NCBI GenBank assembly: GCA_002269645.1
Contig: NIVC01003112.1
Location: forward strand, 1-64,000
Origin: Macrostomum lignano
Taxonomy: Eukaryota
Reading direction: 5' to 3'
DNA length: 64,000 bases
Within the stretch, counting starts at the first letter, position 1. Every line of letters begins with the position of its first letter. The notes beneath the pieces were generated by a model. That model was not told the origin of the DNA. It saw only the letters and a list, made by a program, of their open reading frames with translations, and searched no databases. The translations under genes were made by a program, and so were the position numbers. This document shows positions 3,127 to 58,078 of this stretch, in pieces.

Positions 3127-3720
3127 CCTGACTCTGTACCAGATAGAACCTGACTCTCTGTACCAGATAGAACCTGACTCTCTGTACCAGATAGAACCTG
3201 ACTCTCTGTACCAGATAGAACCTGACTCTCTGTACCAGATAGAACCGGACTCTCTGTACCAGATAGAACCTGACTCTCTGTACCAGATAGAACCTGACTC
3301 TCTGTACCAGATAGAACCTGACTCTCTGTACCAGATAGAACCTGACTCTCTGTACCAGATAGAACCTGACTCTCTGTACCAGATAGAACCTGACTCTCTG
3401 TACCAGATAAAACCTGACTCTCTGTACCAGATAGAACCTGACTCTCTGTACCAGATAGAACCTGACTCTCTGTACCAGATAGAACCTGACTCTCTGTACC
3501 AGATAGAACCTGACTCTCTGTACCAGATAAAACCTGACTCTCTGTACCAGATAGAACCTGACTCTCTGTACCAGATAGAACCTGACTCTGTACCAGATAG
3601 AACCTGACTCTCTGTACCAGATAGAACCTGACTCTCTGTACCAGATAGAACCTGACTCTCTGTACCAGATAGAACCTGACTCTCTGTACCAGATAAAACC
3701 TGACTCTCTGTACCAGATAA
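3127..3720. repeat. 24-bp tandem repeat, about 25 copies
   Basis: Unit AGATAGAACCTGACTCTCTGTACC. Confidence 0.95.
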
Positions 3721-4575: not shown

Positions 4576-6319
4576 GAGACGAAAGTCTCAGCCATGCCAC
4601 GCTTCCTGGAGTCGCCCCCAAAATCTGCACAAAGAACTTCTTACGCAACCAGCTGGCCACGGGCACAGCAATAAGAAGATAGTTGTGAAGTGATTACTGA
4701 TTACCTGGTCCGCCCGGTTACCCCCAAATCCCCGGAGCCCCCGCTGGGACACGCTGTCCCCGTGTTGTCAAACTTCATTCCCGACTCCCTGAAGGGATCT
4801 GCAGGTTGCGCAGCCGGTCTGGCGTGGGTAAAATCCCCGGCTTTGATTTAATCACCCCTTGCCAGTTCCGCTGCAAGCACCACCCCCCCCCCCAGGGATT
4901 CGAGTTAGTGATGAGGAGGGGGGTAATTTTGTTGCTTACACAAAACAAAACAAAACAGAATCCCCGCTTAGCAATCAGGGGATTGCGGTGGCGCCTCAGT
5001 TATCTTGTATCCAGGCGGAACCGGGCCTGCCGGAGCTGTAAATTATCTGTATTAGACAGGTAGGAGAGTTGCCAGGGTCCACGCAGCACAGGTATTGCAG
5101 TTGCAGTTTCGGGTCCAGAGGCTTTCTTTAGATGGCTGTGGCGAGATACTCGCTCCAGACTCCCATTTCTAGCAAAGTGCCCCGCCACTCGCAGTTCCAG
5201 TTCTTCCTTTATCTCCACCTGGGATCTCCATCAAACTCTTAACTGGGCCACAGCCTCTTTAGAGTCCCTCCCATCTTCGTAAAAACAGCCCCAAGGCACT
5301 GGTGGGAGGTGGAGGTTTAACACTGGGGATATAAATTATTACGAGTTTGAACCCGGCCAGATGTCGCCCCAAGAGACTGCGGCAGTTCATAGGCATCATG
5401 CCGTCCATTAAGTTGGGTGTTTTGGGTCTTTGTACCCAAAGTCTTTATTATCTATCCCTGCAGTTTCTGAACATGACGCAGGCAACTCAGTCTTACAGCT
5501 TAATGCTACCTAGAACCTAGCCAGCTAAATTCTGAAAAAAAAGCAGAAAAATGCATTGTAAAACTTACCGAATTGTCAAACTGAGTGTAGGAGCGGCTTA
5601 GGCTTTATCAAAGGCAGAAGAAGTCTTAGTCGTTTGACTGCTTTGTTCTGGAATATTTATAAGACAAAGACCTCTAGCTGACTACTGGGGGACTGGCCCG
5701 CTCGCGTGCTTATTTTTCTACTTGTAGCCTCTCCTCAATCCTACTTCTGGTTCTGGAGCGGCGGGCGGGGTAGGGCGGATCTTATACTGATTATACTGAA
5801 GTGGGGGGCAGAGAGGGGGTGGTGGGCGCTCCAGGACCCGAGCTGGGGTTGGCTGCGGGTGACCCCCACCCCCCAAGCGTCTATAGCGAGACAGATGTCC
5901 CGACCAGGGGGGGGGGGGTTGGGAGCTGCGGGGCCCCGGCCCCCACCGCCCCCAACCGACGCCATGGGAGATGCGGGCGGCGGCCCTGCCAGCCTGTGAC
6001 TCGACAGGCTGTAGCATCAAAGTCTCTTTAGTCTGCTTTTGAAAATAAAAACAAGCAGGGTAAGAGGGATCGGGGATTTATCCTTTTATTTAGCAGTGCG
6101 GAGCCGAGCGGGAGAGCCGGTCTGCAGATGGTGCAGTAAGCAGGTCACGCTGGGGCTTGTCCCCAATTCGGTTTACCAGAGCCCCAAAATAGCAGCAGGA
6201 CTGGAGAACTTAAAAAAGAAAAAACCATTTGCCCAGGGAGTTCCGGATTCTTTGCTGGCCTTGGTCTATATTCTTCTACAATACAATGTTCACTCAATTC
6301 ACGCCTCACGCCTCAAGTC

Positions 6320-7132
6320 ACAGCACCATCACCTCAATTCACAGCGCCATCCCCTCAATTCACAGCGCCATCCCCTCAATTCACAGCGCCATCCCCTCAA
6401 TTCACAGCGCCATCCCCTCAATTCACAGCGCCATCCCTCAATTCACAGCGCCATCCCCTCAATTCACAGCGCCATCCCCTCAATTCACAGCGCCATCCCC
6501 TCAATTCACAGCGCCATCCCCTCAATTCACAGCGCCATCCCCTCAATTCACAGCGCCATCCCTCAATTCACAGCGCCATCCCCTCAATTCACAGCGCCAT
6601 CCCCTCAATTCACAGCGCCATCCTCTCAATTCACAGTGCCATCCCCTCAATTCACAGCGCCATCCCCTCAATTCACAGCGCCATCCCCTCAATTCACAGC
6701 GCCATCCCCTCAATTCACAGTGCCATCCCTCAATTCACAGCGCCATCCCCTCAATTCACAGCGCCATCCCCTCAATTCACAGCGCCATCCCCTCAATTCA
6801 CAGCGCCATCCCTCAATTCACAGTGCCATCCCCTCAATTCACAGCGCCATCCCCTCAATTCACAGCGCCATCCCTCAATTCACAGCGCCATCCCCTAAAT
6901 TCACAGCGCCATCCCTCAATTCACAGCGCCATCCCCTCAATTCACAGCGCCATCCCCTCAATTCACAGCGCCATCCTCTCAATTCACAGTGCCATCCCCT
7001 CAATTCACAGCGCCATCCCCTCAATTCACAGCGCCATCCTCTCAATTCACAGCGCCATCCTCTCAATTCACAGCGCCATCCCCTCAATTCACAGTGCCAT
7101 CCCCTCAATTCACAGCGCCATCCCCTCAATTC
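6320..7132. repeat. 21-bp tandem repeat, about 38 copies
   Basis: Unit CACAGCGCCATCCCCTCAATT, with occasional single-C deletions. Confidence 0.95.
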
Positions 7133-7774
7133 AGCCAGCCCCACCCGTCCAGATATCCTCCCCAGAAGAACTCTCTGGCTTGGCCATGCCACTACAGCGC
7201 AACTCAGCCACAGTCAAACAAGCCATTCTAATCCAATTCCAAAAACTCGAAAGGAACTCGATTCGACTCCGAATTGACCTACTTTCCGATCGCGCAGTCT
7301 AGACTGGAGGCTGGAGCCTCAGCCTCCCCCGGTTAAAACGGGATTGCAATTTCAACGGAGAAAAGTAGCGAAACTCGAAAAAAATCCGAACCACTTTTCA
7401 GTGCGTCTACGAGCTACTTTGCTGCTTTGATTGAAACCAAAAAAGAGTTGATGACGAAAGTTCGGATGGCTCCTTAGTTCGTTCATCATAAATTAATTTT
7501 TTCTCTCAGACACGGCATAAAATGGATGGTGAATGAATGAAAGTTGGGATCAGTTTCCGTCTCGTTCCAATTTTGTGACACGGGTTCTGCATTTGTGGAC
7601 AATCTAAATTCAAAATTCAAGTTTAGTCGCACAAGAGATTGATGGTTTGAATTTTCTTTTAGTGACTTCTCGAAATGCAACAACGGCTACGGGCTCCATT
7701 CAATATTTTTGGGACTTTCTCAGCTCACAGTTCAACTCAACCTTTTCAGATTTTGGACTGCCAATTTTGCTTAT

Positions 7775-10479: not shown

Positions 10480-11574
10480 TCAGGTAGCTGTGACGGCGGG
10501 CCCTGAAACGGTCGAAGTTTTCCCTGTGTAGGTGGAGCCCGCGCGGCCCCGGCCGCCGCCCGGGTTGCCGAAGCAGCGGTCGAGGCGGAACGTGGCCACG
10601 AAGTTGGCGCGGAACCCCTGGCCCATGAAGTAGGCCATCCAGTTGAAGGCGTTATTCATAAACAGTAGCGCGTTCAGGTACTCAAAGATGCGATGTCGGT
10701 CGTTGAGGGGTATCCAGTCCAAGGCCCCGAAAGTCTCAGTGGCGCTGAGCAGGCTCCATGGGAGCGTGAACATCAGGAAGTTGACGTTGAGAATGACCAG
10801 CACCAGGCTGAGCCGAATGGCGCGACTCTTCCTCTTATCGTCGCCGTTGTTGGTCTCGCCGAGGCCGCGGGCGCTGCGCAGCAGCATGACGCAGATCAGC
10901 GTGGTGCCCAGCAGCAGCAGGACGGCCAGCATCAGGCGGCCAACATAGAGCTCGTACTGCGTGTAAAATATGTAATACGCATCGTCATCGACTACACTCA
11001 CGTCTCGAAGCTCCGGATCCCACTCGATCAGGTAGATGGTCAGGGCGGGGAAGGACACGGTCAGAAGCAGAACGATGGCTAGCAAGATGGCGCTGTTTCG
11101 TCGATTCATTAGCTGCTTGGCCTTCAACGGAAAACAGACAGCGACGGCGCGGTCGACTGTGAGGCCCAGCTGCAAAAACGGAGCCCCGAACACCAACAGG
11201 TAAGTAAGGATGTAATAGATGCGCATCACTACAGCGCTCAGACTGCGCACCGGCCGATACCAGGACTGCGGATTCGTGACTAAGATAGTCGTGATCTCCA
11301 AGTAGTAGATTGGGCCCTGGGCCAGAAGGATCACAGTATCGGTGGCGCTAATCATCAGCATGTAAAGCCGGCTGTTTCTAGGAAATGACTTTCTATTGGC
11401 AGCCGTGACGATGAAACAAGCGGCATTAAGAAAACCGCCGCTCAATACCAGGACTGGGAAGAGCCAAGAGAAGACGTGGCGAACGAAAAAGTTCCAGCTG
11501 GGATCCCAGTACCACGGCGTGTACTGGCCGGCTGCGCCGTTGCCTGTCGAGTCGTTGGCCGCAGAGGAATTCAT
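10480..11574 (-). CDS. Intronless class A (rhodopsin-like) GPCR of the peptide/FMRFamide-receptor-like type, 364 aa
   Basis: N-terminal N-glycosylation sites (NSS, NDS) and seven hydrophobic segments. TM1 GGFLN, TM2 SATD, TM3 LTVDRAVAVCFP, TM6 FTLPW, TM7 MNNAFNWMAY, then helix 8 GQGFR. A 3' splice acceptor lies 7 nt before the ATG. Confidence 0.92.
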   Translation of the reverse strand: MNSSAANDSTGNGAAGQYTPWYWDPSWNFFVRHVFSWLFPVLVLSGGFLNAACFIVTAANRKSFPRNSRLYMLMISATDTVILLAQGPIYYLEITTILVTNPQSWYRPVRSLSAVVMRIYYILTYLLVFGAPFLQLGLTVDRAVAVCFPLKAKQLMNRRNSAILLAIVLLLTVSFPALTIYLIEWDPELRDVSVVDDDAYYIFYTQYELYVGRLMLAVLLLLGTTLICVMLLRSARGLGETNNGDDKRKSRAIRLSLVLVILNVNFLMFTLPWSLLSATETFGALDWIPLNDRHRIFEYLNALLFMNNAFNWMAYFMGQGFRANFVATFRLDRCFGNPGGGRGRAGSTYTGKTSTVSGPAVTAT

Positions 11575-12461
11575 GTATGCGCTGCGGGTTAAGAATGGAA
11601 AATTACCCTAGTCTCAGTCCTTGCTTCAATGGCTTAAATCGTGCATTAACTGCAATAGCTAGACTGTCGGCTCTGAGAGCATTTGCTCTTAAAATCAGGG
11701 AGCATAAACATTCTTAGTGGAGCGCCTGCTAATGCGGGCAGGCAAATGCTTTTGGAGTATCTCTGCTATGCATGTTGGTTCTTGAAAAAGTCCAGCAGTT
11801 CAGAGTGTGCTGATCGAAATCATGTCACTGTTAGTAGCTTACCGGCTACACGGCTGTAGAGAGCGGATGAATTTTTGATCCCATCGCTCAGGATTCTTGG
11901 GGATGAAATTTATATACAAGCCCGGATTGAGTAGGTGGTGGGGCACACCGTGCGATCGCAGCATGTGCTGCATTCCCAAAGGAATTGTCTCCGATGGGTG
12001 TATCAAAGGATGCAGCTAAATTGGCTAACTGGAAAAGTGGCAGATGGATGGACAACTCAAAATTCAAAGCCACATTGCGGCTATCAAAGAAGCTTGAAAA
12101 GATTGGAATGGGGCCGTATTTTTGGGCAGCTCATCAATAAATAAAATCTATGCCTAGAGGGTCTAGACTCTTTTAGGGGCCGCCAAATGCAGTTCTTTGA
12201 TTGTTTGTTTATCCGCAGCAAAAAGGCTATTGGGATCGCGTGAGATGGTCTGGTCTTTGTTGTTCAGGCTGCCTTGCAACGGATGGCTACGAATCATTGG
12301 ACTCGACGCTACTGCTTGATCACTTCACCTAAATCGACCCTCCCGCGTTTGGTGTGCCTTTTTGATTGCCTTCGGGTCATACATGGAGACAGGTCATCGA
12401 AGATTGGGTCATTGCTCTGGCGCCTAAGTTTAAATGCACACGTACTCGATACTCGTAAGTC

Positions 12462-12612
12462 GGGGCATCACGAACCCGAAATATCACAAACCCGAAAGTG
12501 TTAGCAGCACCCAACGCTATTTTCGTTTTCGGAGTTGATTAGTTCGGATAGCTCGTATCTCGGGTTTGCGATATTTCGGTTTTTTACATTTCGGGTTTAT
12601 GATGGCGACCCC
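12462..12612. mobile_element. Short MITE-like element with imperfect terminal inverted repeats
   Basis: Left GGGGCATCACGAACCCGAAAT versus the reverse complement of the right end GGGGTCGCCATCATAAACCCGAAAT. Internal ACCCGAAA subrepeats occur in both orientations. Flanks GTAAGTC / GTAAGGC resemble a decayed TSD. Confidence 0.55.
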
Positions 12613-13320
12613 GTAAGGCCTACCGCAGTTTCAATGTACACGTAAGTTAATTTTATTAGGGCAGATATGCTTTAAACAGTACATCAGTAGTTTTAGCTTG
12701 GAAAATGTTAATGGATAGACAGAGAGTTGGAGAGTTTGCACCTAAAGGGATTAATATTAATATATCCACCTATTGAATTCTTGTTATAAATCTTTCAAAA
12801 AATAATCTCCTGGATTCCTTTCTCAATTCTTTAATCGCTAAACACTAGGATTAGGGAATCTCATGAACCTGGTGGGCAGCAACCTACAAATTAAAGACCA
12901 GTTAGTCCACTAAGATAGATCAGAAATAAACCAGTAGCCTAAACCGCGAGAGGACTGCGACTGCATAATCGATTCTCTTACTGATGACTGAATTTACCTA
13001 CGCGGTAAGAACCAGAGTTAGTTAGTAGCATTTTGCCATGTAGCCAAAATATTACTAGCCTTTTTCCAACCAGCCTACTAGTAAGTATTATAAACGAAAT
13101 TTTAACAAACAACAAGCAAGAAATGGAAGAATTTTAATTCGCAATATCTCAAAATGTACAACATTTTCAAACATGTAGATAAGCCGTCCATAAAATATCA
13201 CTCTTTTATTACAAGTGCGGTTATGCTAGATTACGAATAAAACCGAGCAAGTCGATAGAAACAGAAAATTTAACAAGTCTTAATTATTTGGAGATTGTTT
13301 AGAAACTGTACTTTTACAGT

Positions 13321-13824
13321 TCAGCCGCCGTAGTTGCCCGTCACAACGAGCTGCACAGGGGGCGGGTTAGGGCTGGTCCTGCTGCCCAGTTCATCGCGCA
13401 GCCACATGTCATACAGCAGCCGGGCGTCGTCATTCAGCGCCCCACCGCGTACGGTGAGGCCCCCGAAGTTGCCCTGCCACTGCCTGATGAGCTCCTTGAG
13501 TCGGCCGACCGTCTCCCACCTGGCCGCGTGGACCTCGAACTCCCGACCGTCAGCTCGGCGAACCCTGACAGTCATGGCGTCCGGCAGGCTCTCTCCGGGC
13601 GCGAGGCGGCCCACCAGTCGCAGGTAGGACTCGGCCACGGACTGCGCCTCCGACAGCAGGCCGGGCCGCGGTCGCCCTCCGGCCTGAAGCTCCGACTGCA
13701 GGTCCTGAGCTCGTCTCCGCTCGTTCTCAGCAACCTCCGATGCAGGCCCTTTGGCGGCACTGCCGTCGGCTACGCTGGCAATGGCTCTACGGGTGAGTTG
13801 CTCGCTCTGCTGTCGGCTGGCCAT
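13321..13824 (-). CDS. Ubl-A: ubiquitin-like protein with an ~83-aa N-terminal extension and exposed C-terminal Gly-Gly (167 aa)
   Basis: Intronless GC-rich ORF. MTVRVRRADGREFEVHAARWETVGRLKELIRQWQG aligns with ubiquitin [35 protein letters not shown], followed by GLTVRGGALNDDARLLYD (cf. RLIFAGKQLEDGRTLSD) and ending VQLVVTGNYGG*. TATA box upstream and AATAAA at 13205-13210. Confidence 0.85.
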   Translation of the reverse strand: MASRQQSEQLTRRAIASVADGSAAKGPASEVAENERRRAQDLQSELQAGGRPRPGLLSEAQSVAESYLRLVGRLAPGESLPDAMTVRVRRADGREFEVHAARWETVGRLKELIRQWQGNFGGLTVRGGALNDDARLLYDMWLRDELGSRTSPNPPPVQLVVTGNYGG

Positions 13825-13884
13825 GTCTCAATCTGTTGGAGCAGTCCGTGGATTTTACAGGGCCGAGCCATTGTGGCTGGCTGC

Positions 13885-13971
13885 TTTTATAGATGACAGT
13901 CTCCGGGGCTGCTGCGATTCTGTGTGTCGAAGTTCGAATCGGCTCTAGATGAGTCAGAGTTTTCGATTTCG
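13885..13971 (-). promoter_or_regulatory. Ubl-A promoter: TATA box, AP-1 site and IRF/ISRE-like element
   Basis: Minus-strand CTATAAAA at 13885-13892, TGAGTCA at 13950-13956 and minus-strand CGAAATCGAAAACT at 13958-13971. Confidence 0.6.
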
Positions 13972-14894
13972 ATGCTAAGTTTAGCAGTGACGTTGTCAGT
14001 TTTTAAAAAAAATCGTCAGTATGTGATCGTGCGTAGCCCTCCTATGCCTATTTTTGGATGAGAGATGCCGTTTGCTATTTCCTAGAAATGTTTTAGGAAA
14101 ACGACAATTTCTTAGAAACTGTTCGAAACATTTGTGAAAAAATCCTCACTTCTATATTCAGCTTCTACACTTCAAGGGCCAGATAAAGAATCCAGATCAT
14201 GGCCTTGAGAGATGAGAGAAGAGATAGAGACAGAATAGGAGGAGAGAAGAAAGGGATGAGAAGAGAGCTGAGAAGATTGAGCAGGCCGGATTGCTATTTT
14301 GAAGTTTCAAAGGACCCTGAGGGCCGGATAGAGAGGCTTCGCGGCTGACATGTGGCCTGCGTGTAGAATCTACAAGAATGCATCCATGAGACTACGAGTT
14401 CAGCATCCAAGCCTTTCTACATGTATAAGGCTGACCTCATGAGATAAATGATTTAAAAAATTCAATTCTACCACGAACTGAAGGCGCCAAGCTCTGACGA
14501 ATAAAAGTTTATTTTACCGGATTTGTTCTTTCAATGATTAGAGGATGGTTTAAAACATTGCAATTTTTCACCTTGTAGGCGTTTTGTAACGGCCAGAAGC
14601 AGCAAGCAGAAGTGTACGCTGCATGGCTTCATGCAGTGTTGCAGCTGCAGTCCAATTGTTCTATTTTTAGCACCCCGAAGGTGAAACATTTATTGTAGGT
14701 TGGATTTTCCAAGTTAGCCAAATGCCTCCTGCTCAGCAACTAAATATGTGGAATTAAAGATTAACAACGCGAGGGAGTCAAGGACAATTTTTAAACTTCT
14801 TAGGATTTTTATTATTTGGTGGACTTATATTTTCACACATTATAAGAAATATAATCAGTAGATGTTCCGCAAATCACAGTAGAAATCGCGGGCG

Positions 14895-15259
14895 GAGAGC
14901 AAGCTGGTCTGGCGCAGCTGCCAGCGGCAGCCCCCGGGGTGACGTCGAGGAGGGTCAAAAATTTTTTTTGTCGGCCGCTTTGATTCGGCAGAAATCGAGA
15001 AGCGAAATTATTTCAAATAGAAAAATTAACGCGCGAGTTTTTTGGTTTGTCATACGGACAAAGTCGAGAGTAAATAGAATATAATAAGCAAGCATAAAAT
15101 CAATCAAGCCCCCATGTGGGCCAGCATGCAGTTTTACAGCAGCGGTGCTTTTGACAAATATGGGATAAATTCCGACGCAGTTCCCGGACGCCCCCGTCTT
15201 CACCTGGTCGCCGTCGCCCCGGGGGCTGCTGCTCAGCTGGGCCAGACCAGCTTGCTCTC
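14895..15259. repeat. Imperfect ~55-bp GC-rich inverted repeat pair separated by ~250 bp
   Basis: 14895-14950 GAGAGCAAGCTGGTCTGGCGCAGCTGCCAGCGGCAGCCCCCGGGGTGACG matches the reverse complement of 15204-15259. Confidence 0.8.
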
Positions 15260-15607
15260 TCGCACCCAGACCGCTACTAACCGATCTCATAGGCTACAGT
15301 TAGCTTAGCTAAAGTACATTTATAAGATATAGATGAGCTCGCGTATTCAGGTCTTGCTATCGAAAATAGCATCGCATAGCAACACAAAAACACGCACGAA
15401 ACTCATCTAAATCTGTATAAATGGGATGCTTTCCGGCAGCCAGGTGAAGTTTCAGAAGCTCCAGGAAATGAGTCGGATTTTTTTCCCTCGGGATCATTTG
15501 GGACTTTAATATGTTTCCATACAGTTAGTTAAAATTCTCCGCTGCCATAAAGACTACTAGCAAAAAAGGGCAAAGCAAAAAAAGTTAACCGAGTGGCCGT
15601 CCAAAGT

Positions 15608-16090
15608 TCAGCCGCCGGCGTTGCGCACCGTGCTCTGCACTCTGGGCTGGCTGCCATTGGCAACCGTCAGGCTCCCCAGCTGGTTGCGCAGCCAAAGATC
15701 AAATAGAGGCCGGTTGTTGGCCACCGGCCGACCGTCCATGATGAGGCCGCCGCCGCCGATCCGCTCCTGAAGCGACTTCACGGTCTCCCAGCGGGGCACC
15801 GACACCTGGATCGGTCGCCCGTCAGTGCCGTGCACGCGGACCGACATGTTTCCCACCAGGCTCTCGTTCGGGGCCAGCCGACCGACTTGCCGCAGGTAGT
15901 TCTCGGCCACGGACTCGGCCTCGGACAGCAGGCCGGGACGCAGCTGGGGGCCAGCTTGGAGCTCCGCCTGGAGCTCGAGAGCTCGTTGCCGCTCCTGCTC
16001 CAAGTGAGCGGCTTGGCCTGCGCTGCCATCAGCGATGCTGTCGATGGCCCTTCGAATGAGCTGCCTTCGTGCATTCTCCGGTGCTGACAT
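15608..16090 (-). CDS. Ubl-B: paralog of Ubl-A with exposed C-terminal Gly-Gly (160 aa from ATG 16090)
   Basis: Starts AAAAATATG; the ORF track extends it from a non-ATG start. Shares RRAI.S.ADGSA, RPGLLSEA.SVAE.YLR.VGRLAP.ESL, M.VRV...DGR, RWETV and L.D.WLR..LGS with Ubl-A, and ends VQSTVRNAGG*. Confidence 0.85.
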   Translation of the reverse strand: MSAPENARRQLIRRAIDSIADGSAGQAAHLEQERQRALELQAELQAGPQLRPGLLSEAESVAENYLRQVGRLAPNESLVGNMSVRVHGTDGRPIQVSVPRWETVKSLQERIGGGGLIMDGRPVANNRPLFDLWLRNQLGSLTVANGSQPRVQSTVRNAGG

Positions 16091-16179
16091 ATTTTTCTTT
16101 AAACAAGCAGACGTTTCAAGAGTTCTAGAAGTTGAAGCCTTGCACTCGCTTAGCTCTTCCACGGCATTTCCTTGCCGTG

Positions 16180-16210
16180 TTTATATAGACTGTCGCCGTT
16201 TTCGATTTCG
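16180..16210 (-). promoter_or_regulatory. Ubl-B promoter: TATA box and IRF/ISRE-like element
   Basis: Minus-strand CTATATAAA at 16180-16188 and CGAAATCGAAAAC at 16198-16210. A further GAAATCGAAAA (16500-16510, plus strand) lies near TGAGTCA (16471-16477). Confidence 0.6.
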
Positions 16211-17435
16211 GCGCCAATTTTAGACATGACGCGGTGGTTTCATCATAAGCGAGCAATTCCGACCTTGGGACTGGGGCTCCCACGGACTGTCGGTACGGGT
16301 GCGGAGGGCGAATTGGACAGCAGAGAACAGCGCAGACTGAGAGCCAATAAGACCGTGTACTCTGTCAGCAAGTTGCTGAATGTTGCTTGGATTTTCCAAG
16401 AAAATTGAACTTATGCCCCACCTTGCAGTCCCGCTATGATATTTATAAAAAAATCTATTTCTGGAGCATCTGAGTCAGATCCAGAAGCGGTGTTATTTTG
16501 AAATCGAAAATTTTCGCTTTCGTTGTCATATTTTCATGGTGCTTTTGCAGCATCTTGCTCGGAGGGGTCTGATATTTGTACGTACTGTTGCCGTTGATGC
16601 ATTAAAAATTGTTTAACTGCGTACACGCCATATTGCCCGATGTACACTTACAGTATAGTGAGTCTCAAGCGTATGTATTTCTCAATCCCGTTAATAGAGA
16701 TTCATTACTTCTATGCACATTATTAACTAACTAATCTACCCCAAAAAGTTTGCAATGGTCCCGTATGACTTGTTTTGTGTCTAATCGATTAATTCATTTT
16801 GGCAATAAAATTTCCACTATTTTCATTGTTTCGAAAACTCAATAGAAATCAGATCTTAACACTTGAATTGCAATTTCGGGTAGGCTTCAAATAGCTAATT
16901 ATTCTACTCGTAGTAGAAAGTAAGACATTTTTGCAACGGAAAATTGCAGTACGTGGGTACAGACAATAGAGCGCTTGACTACAGACTAGATTTGCATGTG
17001 GCAATATTTTTTTAATGACACGAATAATAAATGTACACGTATAAAGTCGACCGTTTTCACTAGCATAACAATTCTAGTTGCTTAAACAAATTTTTCACGA
17101 ATGAAACGTCGCCACAAAAAACGAGGGCTAATATAGGCTATTAAAAGCTTCCTTTAATGTAATTAAGACATACATCCCAATAAGACGGATAGCCGTCCTT
17201 CCACACAGGTGTCAGAATGAGGGGGGGGCGTGGGGGGGCATGTCCCCACCACTTTTTTTAGCAATTTTTAATACATTTTCCTCCTAATAGAGTGCTTAAA
17301 TTGCTGGATGAGGACTTCATAAAAAAAGATAATTCTATGCAGGAGCGTCGCTTACCGAGGGTACAGGGGGACATGTCCCCAGCCCAGTAAAAGCTATGGG
17401 GGAACGCCAATTCTTTTTAAAACGTTCCGACGTCT

Positions 17436-19853: not shown

Positions 19854-21695
19854 TCTTTTTCTCTTAGCTGCAGGGCTGTCCCGGAGGGGACACAGTGGGA
19901 AGGCACAGGCGCCCATTCCGCTAATCCCTGAACAGCCGACGCGTCGCTATGGACGGAGGGTTGGCGCCGCCCAGGGAGGTCCCCCAGTGTCGCCAGCAGC
20001 TATAGTGCTCTCTGGAAAGGAGAGTTCAGCCCTGTGGGTGGCCCAAAGGTAGCGCATGAGCTGATTAAAGTTTTCGGGTTTGCACGCTTCAGTAATAGAT
20101 GTGTGTGGCCCGAGGTAAGTGAGTCTGGCCCGCGTGAAAGCGGGACAGATGCTGACGAAATGCTCAGCGGTTTCGTCACCTGAGTTGCAGAAACTACAGG
20201 TGGCGTTGGTGGCGTTGCCCTGCAGGTACTGGTGCCTGGAGAAGCAGCCGTGACCTGAGAGGGTCATGGTGGCAGCCCGGATGTCTCTGCGCAAGAGGCG
20301 CAAGAGGAGCTTCCGGAGCTGGTGAGAGGGCTGAGGGACAGTGCCTCTGGATTGCCTGCAGTTTGTGCGGTTCGCCCAAGACGAGCGGTGCTGGGTCCTG
20401 ATCCACGCTTTGATGCGCGAGTCGATGACACAGCCAGGAATCGGGACAAGAGGTTCGGGGCCGAGAGAGGAGCCAGAGGCACCAACTTTTGCAAGGATGT
20501 CAGCCAGCTCATTTCCTCGGATCCCCACATGCCCCGGAACCCACTTAAGGGTAATTTTGTTGGCGGAACCCAACACGTTGAGAAGTTTGATACAGTCAAG
20601 GACTGTAGCAGAGTTCGTGCTGCAGCCACTGATGGCGTGCAAGGCAGCTTGGCTGTCCGAATGGAAAATGATGTTCTTGCCAATAACGCCAGTGGCGAAA
20701 AGCTCTGCAGTGCAGGAGCTGATGGCCAGAACTTCATTTTGGAAAACACTGGAGTTGACCCCAGTGTATTGAGCATGGGTAGCGATGACCCTCCCGTTCA
20801 GAAAGATTCCAACACCAAAGCCGGTGTTGGCTGACTGCTTAGAACCGTCAGTGTAGCAATGAAGCTCACCAAGGTTCCATTGGTCATTGATGTTATCGCG
20901 CGAGTTGATAGCTACGGAGTAGCGCTGTCTCAGGTTGAGCGTTGAGGCAATGCGATTGGTGAAAACGCGATTGGCCTGACACTCGTTGAGAAAGTTGAGG
21001 CACAGGTCGCTATGCGGGACAAGGTTCTGCTTAGCAGGTGCTCTCATGTAAATGAATTTGACGCTGGCATCAATTAGACGCCGCGTCGTTCTAGCCGCCT
21101 CACCCCTGACGAAGAGGTCAAGAGGCGGTAGATTAAGGAAGGCCCCCATGCCAGCAAAGGGCGTGGACCTGGTGGCGTTGCAGATGAGCCTACACGCTCT
21201 GCCTTGGATCGTGTTGAGCAGGTCTGCATGGCTTTTGACCTGGGTAGCGCTAACCCAGACAACTGAGGCGTATGTAATAGCAGGTCTAACTACAGAAGTA
21301 TAGATCCACCAAAGCCGCTTTGGGGATAGACCCCAAGAAGTGCCAAGTGCTCGTCGGAGCTGGGCCAGGATGGCTGAGGCACGCTTGGCTTTTGCTTTCA
21401 CGTGGAAGGACCAGTTGAGCCGGTGGTCAAGTGTGACCCCGAGACATCTGGTCTGGTGCGCCAAGGCAATATCTCTGCCATAGAGCTGCAGAGGTCATAT
21501 GTTCTAGCGTATTCTGCTGGTGAACATAATGGCAACAGTTTTGGGCTCGGAGAGTTCCAGACCATTGTCATTGGCCCAGGATTCTGCTTTGTGGATAAAG
21601 CTCTGCATCAGATCCCTGAGCGTGCTGGGAGACGGTCCTGCCACAATGGCCGTGACCGTGACGTCATCAGCATACCCGACTTTGAAGACGGGTTC
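19854..21695 (-). mobile_element. 5'-truncated non-LTR retrotransposon (RT C-terminal half, RNase H, CCHC; LOA/R1/I-group type)
   Basis: GYADDV at about 21660-21675, two in-frame stops, then LGVTLDHRLNW, RNase H CYTDGSK...SDSQAAL...WVPGHVGIRGNELAD and CSFCNSGDETAEHFVSICP. A 13-bp TSD GTATAATACTACT lies at 19841-19853 and 21696-21708. Confidence 0.93.
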
Positions 21696-27511: not shown

Positions 27512-28943
27512 TGTTAGAGTTTAGGATCTCCGCGTTTTAGGGTCTCCGGCCCGGAGATCACAAACTGAAAATTGTGTCATTTTAAGATCGCCCACACGGA
27601 GATCGGAAACCATAACATAGATAGAGTTACAGGTCTCCGCCGTGTTAGGATCTCCGCGGTTCTTTTCTATATGAAAATTATAGCTACTTCTATGTACATC
27701 GAGATTGGCACCCCAAAGTGTGAGCAGTCTTGCGTAACTTTCAATAGGCTTTGCACATTTTGGAGATCAGCTTTGTACTCATATTTTATGGGTGGCGGGA
27801 AGCGCTGTAAACATTTATATTGGGCAGATGATAAGAAAGGTTTGTGCTGTGTGATTTTCGTCGATTTCTGCATTTCAAAGCTTGATGGCTTCGCTCAATC
27901 AAATATTTTTCTACGTCCTAAACAATGAATATACGCAGGTACCAGCCAGATTGGACGCCAAAGATAAGGCCAACTTAAAAAGACGTATTAGAGAAAAGAG
28001 CAAGCGTTTCTCCATCCATGACGGAGCGCTTTACTACAGGGTGACTAATAAGGACGACAGTCAGCGAATGCGGCCTGAAGACCATCGCAGAGTACTTTTC
28101 ACAGAGGAAGAGATACGGGATAAGATCCGCAGCCTTCACTCGCAAGGAAGTCACGAGGGTGTCAACAGCACAGTGAGCCTTTTTACTGCACGATACTATG
28201 CTGACATCCCCGTCACACCGATTGCCAAGGCAGTGGTCGAGTCTTGTGACAGGTGCGAGCTGGTCACACCGTGGGAGCAGCTGGGGTTCAGGATCTGAAG
28301 CGAGGGGACGATCGGAAGGGTGGTAAGATGCGATACACTTGGAGTCAGCAAGTCTACATCGTGACCAGGTGTCTTGGTCAAAACGTGTACAGGCTAGGAG
28401 GACTAACCAGGTGTGTCAATGGGAAACACCTCAAGAGATGCTTCCTCCAAGCACCGGCTGAAAGTGCATCACCGGTTTTTCACTAAGCGGACATTTACTT
28501 CATTACTTTAACAGTAAACAGTTTTCCATTTAAATACACAGTTGTGCGAGCATATACTCGTACATATAAAACTAATGCTACGTTGATGATAAAAATGCCT
28601 TTCCACTTCTTATACATGTACGCGTTCAATACCATGACCATTGGTTTTACACAAATGGGGGGGGAGATCGGAAACCGGAGATCCTAAACCAGGACTATGT
28701 TTTTGCGGCCCTGACGGAGAGCTGAAACTGGTTTAGAGTCTCCTGGGGGGAGATCAGAAACTGGTTTAAGATCTCCGGGTGCGGAGACCTGAAAATGCCC
28801 CGGAGACCCTTAAACGGTTTCAGATCTCCTACCCCGGAGACCCATAACCGTTAGAAGTCTCCAGGGGAGATCCTAAACCGTTTAGGGTCTCCGCCCCGGA
28901 CACCCTAAACTGACCGGACCCCCGGAGATCCTAAACCATAACA
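27512..28943 (+). mobile_element. Internally deleted Ginger1 (Gypsy-integrase-related) DNA transposon
   Basis: TGTTA...TAACA ends with ~22-bp TIRs (TGTTAnnGTTTAGGATCTCCG), a CCGG TSD (27508-27511, 28944-28947) and many GGAGATCCTAAACC-like subterminal repeats. ORF 27885-28298 has an integrase H2C2 zinc finger (LH..GSHEG..T.....YY...CDRC). The integrase C-terminal part (KGGKMRYTW...LGQNVYRL...VNGKHLK) follows in another frame. No DDE core. Confidence 0.88.
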
Positions 28944-29882: not shown

Positions 29883-31190
29883 ATGAAGATATCAATTTTA
29901 TACTTTCTTTTGCTTCTCCTATGCAGCGATGCCAATGGCAATCCTCAACTCGGGGTTGCAGCTGGTACAGAATTTGAAGCTGGTATTACGGTTGAAGTAG
30001 GACAAGCAACAATGGACTCTACAGTTGAAGAAACAACACAGGAAACTGAAACGGAATCAACACAATTCGTCGATTCTTCGCCAAAAAGTACAGACAGCAA
30101 TTCAATCTCGCCGACAACTACAGTCAGCGAGTCAATCTCGCCGACAACTACAACCAGCGAGTCAATCTCACCGACAACTACAACCAGCGAGTCAATATCG
30201 CCGACAACTACAACCAGCGAGTCAATCTCACCGACAACTACAACCAGCGAGTCAATCTCACCGACAACTACAGTCAGTGAGTCAATCTCGCCGACAACTA
30301 CAACCAGCGAGTCAATCTCACCGACAACTACAACCAGCGAGTCAATATCGCCGACAACTACAACCAGCGAGTCAATCTCACCGACAACTACAACCAGCGA
30401 GTCAATCTCACCGACAACTACAGTCAGTGAGTCAATCTCGCCGACAACTACAACCAGCGAGTCAATCTCACCGACAACTACAACCAGCGAGTCAATCTCA
30501 CCGACAACTACAACCAGCGAGTCAATCTCACCGACAACTACAACCAGCGAGTCAATCTCACCGACAACTACAACCAGCGAGTCAATCTCACCGACAACTA
30601 CAACCAGCGAGTCAATCTCACCGACAACTACAACCAGCGAGTCAATATCGCCGACAACTACAGTCAGTGAGTCAATCTCACCGACAACTACAACCAGCGA
30701 GTCAATATCGCCGACAACTACAACCAGCGAGTCAATCTCACCGACAACTACAACCAGCGAGTCAATCTCACCGACAACTACAACCAGACAGCCAACTCAA
30801 GGGACAAGCTCTGCTGACACAGCAACCACGGGCCCAGACGCAGGTGGAGGCGGTGGCATCCTGACGCCCAGTCAGCTAGCGGCTGTAGTTCTTGGATCGG
30901 TGCTGGTCCTCTCAGTCATCTTCGGCGTAGCGGTTGTGGTGATCCGCCGCCACCGAAGCGAGGCCCGCTTCCGACGACTCCGCTGCGCCGGCTACTTCGA
31001 CGAAGAGGACGACGGCATAGTCGGACTTGGCGGCAGCGATCCGCCGTTGCCGCGAGTGCTGTTCGACGACCAGGGGATTAGCTTCTCGACAAGAGCGCCT
31101 GCATCGGGGAACGCACCGACGGTTGCAGCTCCAGGTATTCAGCAACAGTCGACAGCTAACGAATCATCACTGATTGACTTCAGCGACTAA
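29883..31190 (+). CDS. Intronless mucin-like type I membrane protein (435 aa from ATG 29883)
   Basis: Signal peptide MKISILYFLLLLLCSDANG, about 23 copies of SISPTTT(T/V)SE with synonymous codon variation, TM LAAVVLGSVLVLSVIFGVAVVVI, stop-transfer RRHR, and a cytoplasmic tail ending SLIDFSD. Confidence 0.85.
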   Translation: MKISILYFLLLLLCSDANGNPQLGVAAGTEFEAGITVEVGQATMDSTVEETTQETETESTQFVDSSPKSTDSNSISPTTTVSESISPTTTTSESISPTTTTSESISPTTTTSESISPTTTTSESISPTTTVSESISPTTTTSESISPTTTTSESISPTTTTSESISPTTTTSESISPTTTVSESISPTTTTSESISPTTTTSESISPTTTTSESISPTTTTSESISPTTTTSESISPTTTTSESISPTTTTSESISPTTTVSESISPTTTTSESISPTTTTSESISPTTTTSESISPTTTTRQPTQGTSSADTATTGPDAGGGGGILTPSQLAAVVLGSVLVLSVIFGVAVVVIRRHRSEARFRRLRCAGYFDEEDDGIVGLGGSDPPLPRVLFDDQGISFSTRAPASGNAPTVAAPGIQQQSTANESSLIDFSD

Positions 31191-32339: not shown

Positions 32340-37091
<4,752 letters not shown>

Positions 37092-38009: not shown

Positions 38010-38850
38010 GTCGATCTCAAGTCTCCTCTCAGCCTACCTTTCAGCCTCCCCTCTCAGCCTACCTCTCAGTCTCCCCTCCCAGGCCTACCTCTCAGTCTCC
38101 CTCCCAGGCCTACCTCCCAGGCCTACCTCTCAGTCTCCCTCCCAGTCTCCCTCCCAGTCTCCCTCGCAGGCCTACCTCTCATTCTCCCTCCCAGGCCTAC
38201 CTCTCAGCCTCCCTCTCAGTCTCCTCTCAGTCTCCCTCCCAGGCCTACCTCTCAGCCTCCCTCTCAGTCTCCTCTCAGTCTCCCTCTCAGTCTGCCTCGC
38301 AGGCCTACCTCTCAGTCTCCTCTCAGTCTCCTCTCAGTCTCCTCTCAGTCTCCCTCTCAGTCTCCCTCTCAGTCTCCCTCTCAGTCTCCCTCTCAGTCTC
38401 CCTCAGTCTCCCTCTCAGTCTCCCTCAGTCTCCCTCCCAGGCCTAACTCTCAGTCTCTCTCAGTCTACTTCCTACGCTACCTCTTAGCCTCCCGCTTAGT
38501 CTCTCTCTCAGTCTCCCTCTCAGTCTCCCTCTCAGTCTCCCTCTCAGTCTCCCTCTCAGTCTGCCTCGCAGGCCTACCTCTCAGTCTCCTCTCAGTCTCC
38601 TCTCAGTCTCCTCTCAGTCTCCTCTCAGTCTCCCTCTCAGTCTCCCTCTCAGTCTCCCTCTCAGTCTCCCTCAGTCTCCCTCTCAGTCTCCCTCAGTCTC
38701 CCTCCCAGGCCTAACTCTCAGTCTCTCTCAGTCTACTTCCTACGCTACCTTTTAGCCTCCCGCTTAGTCTCTCTCTCAGTCTCCCTGCTACGCTACTCCC
38801 AGTCTCTCTCTCTCTCTTTCAGTCTCCTCAGTCTCTCTCTCAGCCTCCCT
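38010..38850. repeat. CTCTCAGTCTCC-based ~12-bp degenerate minisatellite with an internal block duplication
   Basis: Directly visible; the CCTAACTCTCAG...CTACGCTACC block occurs twice. Confidence 0.9.
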
Positions 38851-39284
38851 CAGGCTCAGCCTGTTAGATCAACAAGCCACCAAAAGCGAAGCCCGAGCTC
38901 CCAGGCTCACCTGCTGTTGGGCTGTCGTCCCAGTTGCGCGGATCGGCTCTGCCTGGCAGCGGTTGTCTGTCGCTCGCAGCGGTGAATCGCCGGCTGAATC
39001 CCCGGCCAGCTTCGGGCCGAGAGCGCGAGAGCTTTGCAGCCGGGCAGAGTGCGGCCGGGGCAGAGGGGGCCGCCGGGTCCCCCGAGCTGGACGCGAAGGG
39101 ACGTATCAGGCCACCGTCCATTGGAGGGGAGGAGCGCACTCTGCTGCCCGCCTCCCTTCCCCCACTCTGCCCGGATGCGCCTCCTCCTCATTCCAGCGAT
39201 ATCCCTCCCCAGCCAGTCTGCTTTCAGCTGCTTTGCCTGTCTTGAAACTGCCGGTTTGTGCTGCTACTTGCAAGGCTAGTTAAG

Positions 39285-39827
<543 letters not shown>

Positions 39828-40461
39828 ATTTCACACGAGCCGGAACCGTGTTCATTATGCGTGTCTCTCCGCATCCCCCAGGAGAGATCCTGGAGCCTGA
39901 GTCACCGGATTCATCCGCCATTTCCAAGTCACCCCTGGATCTCTCGCAGGCCTATAATCAAAGTCCAGCTTGTAAGCAACAGAGTAAAAAAGTATCACTT
40001 TGTTTACAAAGTTTTCCGCGCATATTCTGCGCCATTCCGCTCCTTCTGCCACTTTGATGTGGGCACTGCGGCTGCGGTTTGAGCGCCGCAGAGCCGGCCG
40101 GATCAGCTCATTAATGAGGCACGCGTGGGGCAGCTCCGAGACGGGGATAATGGACTGAGAGAGGCTCCAGGCAGGCGTGGAGGGGCCGGCGCAGGGCGAC
40201 AGAAGCTGTTTATAAAATCAACGAAGCGGCCTCTGCCAAAAAAGGATTTGAAGAGATTTTGGGGCAAGGGAGATTGCAAGGGGAGAGAGGTTGAAGGAAG
40301 GAAAAGAGGAAGATGGAAAGCGGGAGAAGGAGAGAGGTTGAGATAGAGGGGGGAAAGGGGAGAGGTAGAAAGGAGAGTGATAGAGGGAAATGGGAGAGGG
40401 AGAGGGAGAGAGTGAGAGGAAGAGAAGAGAGGGAGATGGCACTGCCTAATCAGTTAAAAAG

Positions 40462-43797: not shown

Positions 43798-53355
<9,558 letters not shown>

Positions 53356-57400: not shown

Positions 57401-58078
57401 TGGATTGCTAATCTAGCCTATCATGGGTGCAGGAATAGAATGGATTGCTAATCTAGCCTATCATGGGTGCAGGAATAGAATGGATTGCTAATCTAGCCTA
57501 TCATGGGTGCAGGAATAGAATGGATTGCTAATCTAGCCTATCATGGATGCAGGAATAGAATGGATTGCTAATCTAGCCTATCATGGATGCAGGAATAGAA
57601 TGGATTGCTAATCTAGCCTATCATGGATGCAGGAATAGAATGGATTGCTAATCTAGCCTATCATGGGTGCAGGAATAGAATGGATTGCTAATCTAGCCTA
57701 TCATGGATGCAGGAATAGAATGGATTGCTAATCTAGCCTATCATGGATGCAGGAATAGAATGGATTGCTAATCTAGCCTATCATGGATGCAGGAATAGAA
57801 TGGATTGCTAATCTAGCCTATCATGGATGCAGGAATAGAATGGATTGCTAATCTAGCCTATCACGGATGCAGGAATAGAATGGATTGCTAATCTAGCCTA
57901 TCACGGATGCAGCAATAGAATGGATTGCTAATCTAGCCTATCATGGGTGCAGGAATAGAATGGATTGCTAATCTAGCCTATCACGGATGCAGGAATAGAA
58001 TGGATTGCTAATCTAGCCTATCATGGATGCAGGAATAGAATGGATTGCTAATCTAGCCTATCATGGATGCAGGAATAG
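54424..58078. repeat. 3.6-kb composite satellite: 23-bp unit on the left, 40-bp unit on the right
   Basis: ATGGATTGCTAATCTAGCCAGYC grades into TGGATTGCTAATCTAGCCTATCAYGGATGCAGGAATAGAA. Confidence 0.97.

Follow-up and report, generated by a model that had tools for sequence, protein, structure and literature searches.

Do two small neighboring genes in the flatworm Macrostomum lignano encode a new ubiquitin-like protein tag, one that is made with its C-terminal glycines already exposed? Animals are known to have only about a dozen kinds of ubiquitin-like modifier, of which the lineage-restricted ones, ISG15 and FAT10, proved to be immune effectors. We analyzed the two genes, here called A and B, together with their surroundings in a window of 64 kb (the whole stretch of DNA under study) and their relatives elsewhere, and we regard their products as credible candidates for a new protein tag.

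Two intact tandem genes

Genes A and B lie on the minus strand, separated by 1,783 nt, and their products align over the full length at 55% identity (BLASTP E value of 3e-44); they are paralogs (Table 1). The preliminary description had reported two intronless, same-strand paralogs about 1.8 kb apart, each protein stopping straight after N-x-G-G, and both points held: the C termini read VTGNYGG-stop in A and VRNAGG-stop in B, neither ORF is interrupted, and in the NCBI annotation of two sister contigs each gene is a single exon as long as its ORF here. The B-then-A pair recurs on two other contigs (95 to 97% identical), with neither ORF disrupted in any of the three genomic copies. Among NCBI proteins, the product of A is 98% identical to PAA58158.1 (BOX15_Mlig030606g3) and that of B is 92% identical to PAA58157.1 (BOX15_Mlig027467g1). 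The whole protein has a predicted mass of ~18 kDa.

The remainder of the window contains a rhodopsin-type GPCR, a retroelement RNase H fragment, an integrase fragment, a calpain exon, and minisatellites; no E1, E2, or DUB gene lies within its 64 kb. Lysine is scarce in the encoded proteins (two residues in A, one in B, and none in the homolog X described below). We gave lysine poverty little weight as a functional signal because further coding ORFs in the window share the Arg-rich, Lys-poor bias at a GC3 of ~0.8.

Table 1. Features of genes A and B and their flanks, with positions counted from the first nucleotide of the window
Feature	Position	Strand	Description or basis
Gene A CDS	13321..13824	minus	167 aa + stop, intronless, ends GNYGG-TGA
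Gene A, three-helix N-terminal domain	13579..13824	minus	aa 1-82; AF2 of domain alone
Gene A, ubiquitin-family beta-grasp	13339..13578	minus	aa 83-162, ~10-aa insertion at aa 145-156; AF2, Foldseek, hhalign
Gene A, tail G-N-Y-G-G, free C terminus	13324..13338	minus	Sequence; stop codon 13321-13323 immediately after
Gene A, poly(A) signal AATAAA	13205..13210	minus	~110 nt past stop codon, read from sequence
Gene A, TATA box TATAAAA	13885..13891	minus	61-67 nt 5' of ATG, read from sequence
Gene A, upstream conserved block	13953..13992	minus	13-mer CGAAATCGAAAAC at 13959-13971, ISRE/IRF-like GAAANNGAAA core
Gene B CDS, from first ATG	15608..16090	minus	160 aa + stop, intronless, ends RNAGG-TGA
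Gene B, three-helix N-terminal domain	15851..16090	minus	aa 1-80; aligned to gene A
Gene B, ubiquitin-like beta-grasp	15623..15850	minus	aa 81-156; profile alignment to ubiquitin and family alignments
Gene B, tail N-A-G-G, free C terminus	15611..15622	minus	Sequence; stop codon 15608-15610 immediately after
Gene B, poly(A) signal ATTAAA	15505..15510	minus	~100 nt past stop codon, read from sequence
Gene B, TATA box TATATAAA	16180..16187	minus	90-97 nt 5' of ATG, read from sequence
Gene B, upstream conserved block	16192..16231	minus	Identical 13-mer CGAAATCGAAAAC at 16198-16210
Palindromic ISRE-like core pair GAAATCGAAAATTTTCGCTTTC	16500..16521	none	~420 nt upstream of gene B

A restricted family under purifying selection

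When 1.84 billion protein representatives were searched exhaustively with HMMER, the full architecture was recovered in M. lignano only, plus one SRA sequence (homolog X); the remaining 62 matches were polyubiquitin or multi-Ubl proteins that aligned on the Ubl part only. Homolog X is encoded on a Logan contig from SRA run SRR28338163 and ends in RNVGG-stop; the contig starts 45 nt ahead of the ATG, ends at AATAAA, and is thus mRNA-like. Apart from one Logan contig, all full-length relatives returned by a word-index search of 5.8 billion proteins came from M. lignano. A third paralog, C, is 30% identical, has two introns, and ends in GSG-stop; ARAGORN gave no confirmation for a tRNA-like stretch within one of its introns. 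From these searches the family appears to be small and so far limited to M. lignano and one sequencing sample. Literature searches found no paper on the BOX15 gene ids and nothing relevant on Macrostomum ubiquitin-like proteins or on the SRA run, and Pfam gave nothing above threshold, in agreement with the earlier proposal of a lineage-specific group outside any described family.

A horizontal origin from bacteria, raised at the same time, gained nothing from our searches, in which the best matches outside the family were polyubiquitin-type repeats of the eukaryotic kind. EACC1, a bacterial conflict-system Ubl (PF19953), scored 15.2 bits against a cutoff of 23.6 bits, over residues 83 to 115 only, and we rejected a bacterial source. 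The BFVD viral fold library returned generic viral ubiquitin-likes only and thus gave no sign of a viral source.

Genes A and B are under purifying selection. Among A, B, and X, dN/dS is 0.25 to 0.42 (0.37 for A versus B) at a dS of ~1, which argues that these are not chance ORFs; values against paralog C are saturated and uninformative. Constraint differs along the protein, with an omega of 0.30 to 0.58 in the Ubl domain versus 0.26 to 0.32 in the helical domain, so the Ubl half is the less constrained. Within the helical domain, A and B agree at 86% of residues 53 to 80, where omega is 0.09 to 0.24.

A predicted ubiquitin fold behind a new helical domain

The AlphaFold2 (AF2) model of full-length A places three helices (residues 4-20, 29-47, and 56-70) ahead of two strands (83-90 and 95-101), a helix (106-117), two further strands (122-125 and 128-130), a helix (137-143), and a final strand (158-162), the last two separated by a low-confidence loop (145-156). 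This bb-a-bb-a-b topology follows the order of ubiquitin, beta-beta-alpha-beta-beta-(short helix)-beta. Foldseek matched the model to the ISG15 C-terminal domain, NEDD8, and ubiquitin (TM score of 0.76 to 0.81, E value of ~3e-4, probability of 1.00, among the best 50 matches listed), and the same 50 include chains solved within E1 and protease complexes. An hhalign comparison of the family profile with ubiquitin, NEDD8, ISG15, and FUBI gave a probability of 83% (E value of 9e-6), and the family HMM matched PDB entries for single ubiquitin at an E value of ~3e-3 and for polyubiquitin at 1e-27; a single-sequence search of the PDB gave no meaningful match. The Pfam ubiquitin family (PF00240) reached 13.1 bits against a gathering cutoff of 25.4 bits, a score that stands beside the hhalign and PDB profile matches. 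Across both proteins and seven family members, the Pfam matches to EACC1, ubiquitin, and Ubiquitin_4 were all subthreshold and fell on residues 83 to 118.

Because the profile alignment pairs residues 84 to 140 with ubiquitin residues 1 to 59, about 10 extra residues precede the last strand. Model and alignment therefore agree with the preliminary description, which had read ~80 aa at the N terminus and then a ubiquitin-like pattern interrupted by an insertion ahead of its final strand, and had proposed a structure prediction as a check on the beta-grasp. As modeled, the C-terminal part is a genuine ubiquitin-family beta-grasp. The equivalent of ubiquitin Gly47 is invariant across the family; the Ile44 position holds T in A, I in B and X, and L in C, and the Leu8 position holds A in A, T in B and X, and I in C. 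The hydrophobic patch of ubiquitin, the canonical E1-binding patch, is thus only partly retained in the aligned residues.

When modeled alone, the N-terminal domain of A again forms three helices (residues 2-20, 30-47, and 56-71; pLDDT of 82.6). A PDB fold search with this model gave a best match of only E = 4.7, and hence no fold neighbor, and Pfam found nothing on the domain in either protein or in any of the seven family members. On these predictions, the ~80-residue N-terminal domain is new and has no recognizable relatives.

The glycine tail

All available A-type, B-type, and X-type sequences carry Gly-Gly directly before the stop codon. The terminal glycine (G167) is one of 23 columns invariant across the four subfamilies, whose tails read GNYGG (A), RNAGG (B), RNVGG (X), and RCGSG (C); it and the stop position are retained even in paralog C, where the penultimate glycine is replaced by serine. 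In the AF2 model of A, residues 161 to 167 have a mean pLDDT of 53, in line with a flexible tail, which extends 4 to 5 residues past the last strand. The earlier claim that selection maintains the diglycine survives in part. It is favored by the Gly-Gly-stop ending in all A, B, and X sequences and by a synonymous change in the penultimate codon (GGA GGC in X, GGC GGC in A and B), but retention does not clearly exceed general constraint, since any chosen pair of residues would be kept together in ~30% of cases at 55% identity, and C ends in GSG.

The residues before the glycines bear on which enzyme could activate these proteins. Subfamilies B, X, and C have an arginine at the position of ubiquitin Arg72 (R-x-x-G/S-G; Arg156 in B), in a register counted back from the C terminus, as hhalign spans ubiquitin 1 to 59 only; the A tail, T-G-N-Y-G-G, lacks it. 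For ubiquitin E1, Arg72 is strictly required, whereas residues 71, 73, and 74 can vary and serine is allowed at 75 (PMC3731359), so the B, X, and C tails fit its published minimal rule, while A may use another E1 or none. In the ubiquitin cascade, transfer from E2 to E3 is blocked when positions 74 and 75 of ubiquitin carry nonnative residues (PMC3731359), so a modifier that borrowed this pathway would stall if it had no dedicated enzymes. The tails match neither LRLRGG of ISG15 nor CYCIGG of FAT10.

A shared promoter element

The DNA flanking the two genes, described earlier as unrelated, is not wholly so: A and B have in common a ~40-nt promoter block that contains the exact 13-mer CGAAATCGAAAAC within 108 to 147 nt 5' of each ATG. 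This 13-mer occurs twice in the 64 kb, both times in these promoters, compared with 0.05 occurrences expected. Interferon-response-like GAAANNGAAA motifs, whose cores we take to resemble an ISRE, cluster around both genes. A and B are probably coregulated through the common upstream element with its IRF/ISRE-like GAAANNGAAA core.

Possible functions of the A/B family

We favor the reading that the A/B family is a conjugated ubiquitin-like modifier, at a probability of roughly 0.4, ahead of an adaptor and of a C-terminal degron. The entire protein would be a ready-made modifier, in size and logic akin to the two-domain ISG15 and FAT10: an E1 would adenylate the free C-terminal glycine, the modifier would then be transferred to target lysines with no need for a maturation protease, and the conserved helical domain would serve as an effector surface shown on the modified target. 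The arginine tails of B, X, and C would suit ubiquitin E1, and A may engage a different E1 or none. In favor of conjugation we count the fold matches, the free glycine end, the Arg72 tail rule, the retention of a Gly-Gly that matches a degron consensus, and the signs that the genes are real and regulated. Against it we count the weaker constraint on the Ubl domain, the partly kept patch, the GSG end of C, the background level of Gly-Gly retention, the E2-to-E3 block, the lack of E1, E2, and DUB genes in the window, and the subthreshold Pfam ubiquitin score. A more elaborate scenario is a long shot: an inducible conjugation system resembling that of ISG15 would have arisen independently in macrostomid flatworms, with a helical-plus-Ubl modifier that is made with its Gly-Gly free, switched on through the IRF/ISRE-like GAAANNGAAA elements clustered at the locus, and attached to targets by an existing E1 (ubiquitin E1 for B, X, and C and another E1 for A). 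If true, this would give invertebrates a convergent equivalent of ISGylation.

A nonconjugated Ubl adaptor is possible and has to be taken seriously. Here the helices would bind a partner and the Ubl domain would dock, for example, onto proteasome or ubiquitin receptors, or pack against the helices, with Gly-Gly as a relic of a ubiquitin-type ancestor, retained because the last strand and the tail belong to the fold. Such a role would suit a protein constrained most in its helical domain, at residues 53 to 80, rather than in the Ubl domain, as well as the serine in C, a diglycine conserved no more than overall identity predicts, and the partial E1-binding patch; the full-length model, with its pTM of 0.64, also suggests that the two domains may pack against each other. 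It accounts less well for a stop codon placed right after the terminal glycine in all four subfamilies despite indels elsewhere and a dS of ~1 or above. Adaptor Ubl domains are seldom known to stop precisely at an exposed Gly-Gly. Such an end would also be a liability, since CRL5-KLHDC1 and CRL2-KLHDC2, which bind NEDD8-like Ubl tails, have a C-terminal Gly-Gly as their consensus degron (PMC11568203); keeping the diglycine therefore needs a functional reason.

That liability could itself be the function, with the exposed diglycine read by a KLHDC1/2-type cullin-RING ligase and the protein short-lived, for instance as a pulse-like inducible regulator. We consider this unlikely. The Gly-Gly end required of KLHDC1/2 substrates is present in A, B, and X, the Foldseek matches include a ubiquitin variant in complex with KLHDC3 (9d1z), and the TATA promoters of A and B share a possibly inducible element. 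The GSG end of paralog C, however, has none of the penultimate residues listed for KLHDC consensus degrons (PMC11568203), and a degron leaves the complete beta-grasp immediately upstream unexplained. Degradation through the tail is, moreover, compatible with the modifier and adaptor readings and exclusive of neither.

It is very improbable that A and B are nonfunctional retrocopies or chance ORFs amid repeats. The two genes are intronless where paralog C has two introns, minisatellites and retroelement fragments are plentiful in the window, and no transcript of A or B was found in the collections searched; against this stand the dN/dS values at a dS of ~1, the ORFs intact in every genomic copy, a TATA box and poly(A) signal for each gene, the promoter block conserved in both, and the mRNA-like contig of X. 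Hardly credible is a sulfur carrier of the URM1/MoaD/ThiS type, which would likewise bear a free Gly-Gly on a beta-grasp and use it as a thiocarboxylate, given that the sequence and fold neighbors are essentially all ubiquitin, NEDD8, and ISG15, with no URM1, MoaD, or ThiS among the best 50 Foldseek or best 60 PDB profile matches and no ThiS/MoaD-family match to the A/B family in Pfam, and that an 80-aa helical extension and lineage restriction are unlike housekeeping sulfur transfer.

If the A/B proteins are conjugated, they would represent an independently evolved modifier in which a genuine ubiquitin fold and a new helical "cargo" domain come together with a ready-made glycine end and a cluster of interferon-response-like promoter motifs; if they are not, they still offer a clean example of a gene family both young and taxonomically restricted. 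The family may have arisen when a ubiquitin-type exon was joined to a novel domain, followed by intron loss and tandem duplication. Transgenesis and RNAi are feasible in M. lignano, and the conjugation claim is therefore directly testable.

Comparison with known ubiquitin-like systems

Some adaptors share the general layout of A and B: SF3A1 and RENi/NIP45-type proteins have a helical or coiled N-terminal part and a Ubl at the C-terminal end. They are not known to end in an exposed Gly-Gly, and no sequence relationship to them emerged from Pfam or protein-database searches.

Ubiquitin and NEDD8 share with the flatworm proteins a homologous beta-grasp, the invariant Gly47, I or L at Ile44 in three of four subfamilies, Arg72 in B, X, and C, and the Gly-Gly end. 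The flatworm proteins differ from them in their low identity (~20 to 25%), the ~10-residue insertion before beta-5, the 80-aa N-terminal extension, and their poverty in lysine.

FAT10 (UBD), a mammalian tandem-Ubl modifier of ~165 aa, has a pre-exposed Gly-Gly, needs no processing protease, and uses UBA6. The flatworm proteins resemble it in having a free C-terminal Gly-Gly as made, in size, and in their taxonomic restriction; unlike FAT10, they have a helical N-terminal domain, and sequence similarity does not go beyond the generic Ubl signal.

ISG15, the interferon-stimulated modifier of vertebrates, resembles the flatworm proteins in several ways, with two domains in ~160 aa, a C-terminal ubiquitin-type beta-grasp ending in Gly-Gly, and a C-terminal domain that is the best structural neighbor among the 50 Foldseek matches listed. 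It too is lineage restricted and fast evolving, and the GAAANNGAAA cores clustered around the flatworm genes may be ISRE-like. The tandem beta-grasp pair of ISG15 and FAT10 is nevertheless absent from A and B, whose N-terminal domain is predicted to be a three-helix bundle and not a second Ubl. The flatworm tails (RNAGG and GNYGG) likewise differ from LRLRGG, identity to ISG15 is ~20%, and we know of no UBA7-like E1 in flatworms. The flatworm proteins also have no C-terminal propeptide, so that, unlike ISG15, each would leave the ribosome with its glycine end already free.

A tandem pair of intact genes for ubiquitin-like proteins

The window is DNA of Macrostomum lignano, a flatworm with a free-living habit. 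ORF A and ORF B, both on its minus strand, encode ubiquitin-like (Ubl) paralogs that share 55% identity over their full length (BLASTP E, 3e-44) and lie 1,783 nt apart. The preliminary description of two paralogous Ubl ORFs ending in a free Gly-Gly was confirmed, and the layout that it gave (an N-terminal region of ~80 aa, a Ubl pattern, an insertion before the last strand, and N-x-G-G-stop) was accurate. Both genes carry signals that are ordinary for small eukaryotic genes. PAA58158.1 (BOX15_Mlig030606g3), labeled automatically in UniRef as "Ubiquitin-like domain-containing protein," matches ORF A at 98% identity, and PAA58157.1 (BOX15_Mlig027467g1) matches ORF B at 92%. The B-then-A pair also occurs on two further contigs of GCA_002269645.1 (loci L002 and L003), and all six ORFs are intact. 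Because the matching stretches are 93 to 99% identical to the window, intergenic DNA included (main blocks, 95 to 97%), these pairs are homeologous or allelic copies and do not count as independent evidence.

The B-to-A spacer measures 1.8 kb in the window (13825-15607), 2.0 kb in L002, and 3.9 kb in L003 (NIVC01000406.1; L003 2066-6000), so that one homeolog or allele carries an insertion of ~2 kb between the genes. The spacer also holds an inverted repeat, shared with L002 and L003 (arms ~59 nt, 84 to 96% complementary, ~250 nt apart), which looks like a foldback or MITE-like insertion.

Features of the window around genes A and B and beyond
Feature	Position	Strand	Details
ORF A	13321-13824	minus	Uninterrupted; 167 aa; C-terminus ...VQLVVTGNYGG-TGA
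ORF B	15608-16090	minus	From first ATG; uninterrupted; 160 aa; C-terminus ...VQSTVRNAGG-TGA
Gene A TATA box	13885-13891		TATAAAA
Gene A AATAAA	13205-13210
Gene B TATA box	16180-16187		TATATAAA
Gene B ATTAAA	15505-15510
Shared promoter block, gene A	13953-13992		Contains exact 13-mer CGAAATCGAAAAC
Shared promoter block, gene B	16192-16231		Contains exact 13-mer CGAAATCGAAAAC
GAAANNGAAA sites	12521-12530, 13961-13970, 16200-16209, 16512-16521	minus
GAAANNGAAA sites	13258-13267, 16500-16509	plus
Spacer inverted repeat	14895-14953, 15203-15259
Rhodopsin-family GPCR ORF	10483-11607	minus	Pfam 7tm_1, E 2e-10; intronless; 375 codons stop to stop
Retroelement remnant	19950-21494	minus	ORF with RNase H domain, E 1.5e-10
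Retroelement remnant	27855-28295	plus	Integrase zinc-binding domain ORF; weak match, E 4e-4
Calpain exon-like ORF	44472-45005	plus	Pfam Peptidase_C2, E 2.4e-27; N-terminal half of protease domain
Minisatellite/microsatellite arrays, very dense	1775-2701, 3132-3719, 6293-7133, 30095-30787, 33512-34934, 38015-41270, 45682-47422, 47928-50104, 54422-62474

A novel helical domain joined to a beta-grasp

The AlphaFold2 model of ORF A, built from an alignment of only three sequences (pLDDT, 72.9; pTM, 0.64), has three helices (aa 4-20, 29-47, and 56-70), then strands (83-90 and 95-101), a helix (106-117), two short strands (122-125 and 128-130), a helix (137-143), a low-confidence loop (145-156), and a last strand (158-162) leading into the tail GNYGG. 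The predicted order of elements after the three helices is that of the ubiquitin beta-grasp. Foldseek matched the model to the ISG15 C-terminal domain, NEDD8, and ubiquitin in the PDB (E, ~3e-4; probability, 1.00; target-normalized TM, 0.76 to 0.81; identity, ~20%). Sequence comparison agrees, more weakly: the Pfam ubiquitin score is 13 bits, under the cutoff, while hhalign of the family profile against ubiquitin, NEDD8, ISG15-C, and FUBI gives a probability of 83% (E, 9e-6), with residues 84-140 aligned to ubiquitin 1-59. Single ubiquitin chains in the PDB are matched by the profile at an E of ~3e-3, and a nine-repeat polyubiquitin at 1e-27. In the hhalign register, the Gly47 position is invariant in the family, and the Ile44 position is T in A, I in B and in X (a homolog on a Logan contig), and L in C (a third M. 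lignano paralog). About 10 extra residues with a conserved L-G-S-x-T motif precede the last strand. Modeled alone, the N-terminal domain again forms three helices (pLDDT, 82.6); it has no Pfam match and no PDB fold neighbor better than an E of 4.7.

Genes A, B, and X encode no cysteine, and their products are very lysine poor and arginine rich (K/R, 2/21, 1/18, and 0/21, respectively; X at L001 46-543). Other coding ORFs of the window, at a GC3 of ~0.8, are also lysine poor, so this bias is partly compositional. A modifier without lysine could not form self-chains.

Distribution, history, and constraint

By word-index searching and by an exhaustive HMMER scan over 1.84 billion representatives, the full architecture was recovered from just two sources, M. 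lignano and one Logan contig; the family appears to be lineage restricted, as had been proposed. X (P0003; 165 aa; run SRR28338163) ends in RNVGG-stop and is 58% identical to B; its 1.3-kb contig is mRNA-like, running from 45 nt 5' of the ATG to an AATAAA, and matches the window only in the coding region. Alongside the A and B types, M. lignano has subfamily C (PAA62498.1, PAA59051.1, and UniRef A0A1I8H5E3), whose protein is 189 aa long when counted from its real start and shares 30% identity with A. The remaining matches, outside the family, were polyubiquitin or multi-Ubl proteins, aligned over the Ubl part only, and lend no support to the bacterial origin that the preliminary description had raised. 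A viral origin is unsupported as well, the viral fold library having returned only generic ubiquitin-likes.

The C gene (locus L004, NIVC01001929.1) has three exons, and a phase-0 GT...AG intron (L004 10328-11023) separates the helical domain from the first Ubl strand precisely at their junction (...DDVE/FEYS...). ARAGORN did not confirm a tRNA-like stretch in this intron (L004 ~10690-10760). The absence of introns from A and B, together with the domain-boundary intron of C, suggests that the domains were fused at the exon level and that intron loss or retroposition came later. Plausibly, a ubiquitin-type exon and a novel helical exon were joined, a copy without introns then arose, perhaps by retroposition, and a tandem duplication of this copy yielded B and A.

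Nei-Gojobori dN/dS is 0.37 for A versus B (dS, ~1.0), 0.25 to 0.28 for B versus X, and 0.26 to 0.53 for near-identical genomic copies, leaving out the A copies of L002 and L003, which are one synonymous change apart. Given these low values between copies and paralogs, the genes are real. By these estimates, constraint is strongest on the novel helical domain (0.26 to 0.32; helix-3 block, aa 53-80, 0.09 to 0.24 and 86% identical between A and B) and not on the Ubl domain (0.30 to 0.58). Overall, the A/B family is a new Ubl-domain variant in which a helical domain of a novel kind precedes a true ubiquitin-type beta-grasp and the Gly(-Gly) end is pre-exposed.

Promoters and genomic neighborhood

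Apart from one block of ~40 nt, the promoters of A and B are diverged; the exact 13-mer CGAAATCGAAAAC of this block occurs in the window only at these two places (0.05 expected). Its core, GAAANNGAAA, looks like the IRF/ISRE element that interferon-stimulated genes of vertebrates carry. Nine GAAANNGAAA matches occur in the 64-kb window, six of them within 12521-16521; the stricter pattern GAAANNGAAAMY has six matches, each of them in this same interval, for which local Markov simulation predicts 0.33 (six or more in 0 of 5,000 simulations). Two of the six sites form a palindrome upstream of B (16500-16521), and the independent sites number five because the two promoter copies are paralogous. 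A diverged IRF3/4-like gene is known from a planarian (PMC13563047).

No ubiquitin-enzymology genes lie near A and B in the 64-kb window. Gene A is followed, ~1.7 kb downstream and in the same orientation, by the GPCR ORF, and minisatellites flank the calpain exon-like ORF. The minisatellite and microsatellite arrays (periods, 4 to 40 nt; up to 345 copies, or 128 at longer periods) give rise to long spurious ORFs and account for the strong GC and AT skews of the composition profile.

Possible roles of the free Gly-Gly

Selection on the Gly-Gly, as put forward in the preliminary description, has points both for and against it. Gly-Gly-stop closes all A, B, and X sequences, with a synonymous difference in the penultimate Gly codon (GGA in X versus GGC); just 23 columns are invariant across all four subfamilies, the terminal Gly among them, and each subfamily keeps its stop codon in place despite indels elsewhere. 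However, two given residues would both be kept in ~30% of cases at 55% identity, and the penultimate residue in C is Ser (GGC AGC GGC TGA, or G-S-G-stop). Such a pattern fits selection acting on the glycine end but is not proof of it.

The cullin-RING ligases of KLHDC1 and KLHDC2 have C-terminal Gly-Gly as their consensus degron and bind NEDD8 as well (PMC11568203). A retained free Gly-Gly would therefore serve conjugation or act as a degron, or else be tolerated at a cost. We consider a candidate conjugatable modifier the best single reading (probability, roughly 40%), slightly ahead of a non-conjugated adaptor, which we hold to be a serious possibility; a C-degron is unlikely. The family is a good candidate, cheap to test in a tractable animal, and would not yet surprise a specialist.

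For a conjugatable modifier, the tails can be compared with rules established with ubiquitin itself. Counting backwards from the C-terminus, B (V-R-N-A-G-G), X (V-R-N-V-G-G), and C (G-R-C-G-S-G) have Arg at the position of ubiquitin Arg72, whereas A has Thr and one extra residue (T-G-N-Y-G-G). In phage display, Arg72 is a strict requirement of ubiquitin E1, with relaxed specificity at 71, 73, and 74 and Ser accepted at 75; NEDD8 E1 accepts no positive charge at 72, and E2-to-E3 transfer is blocked when 74 and 75 hold non-native residues (PMC3731359). By analogy, at the level of the tail peptide, a ubiquitin-type E1 could charge B, X, and C but not A, and onward transfer of any of the four through the ordinary ubiquitin cascade would be doubtful.
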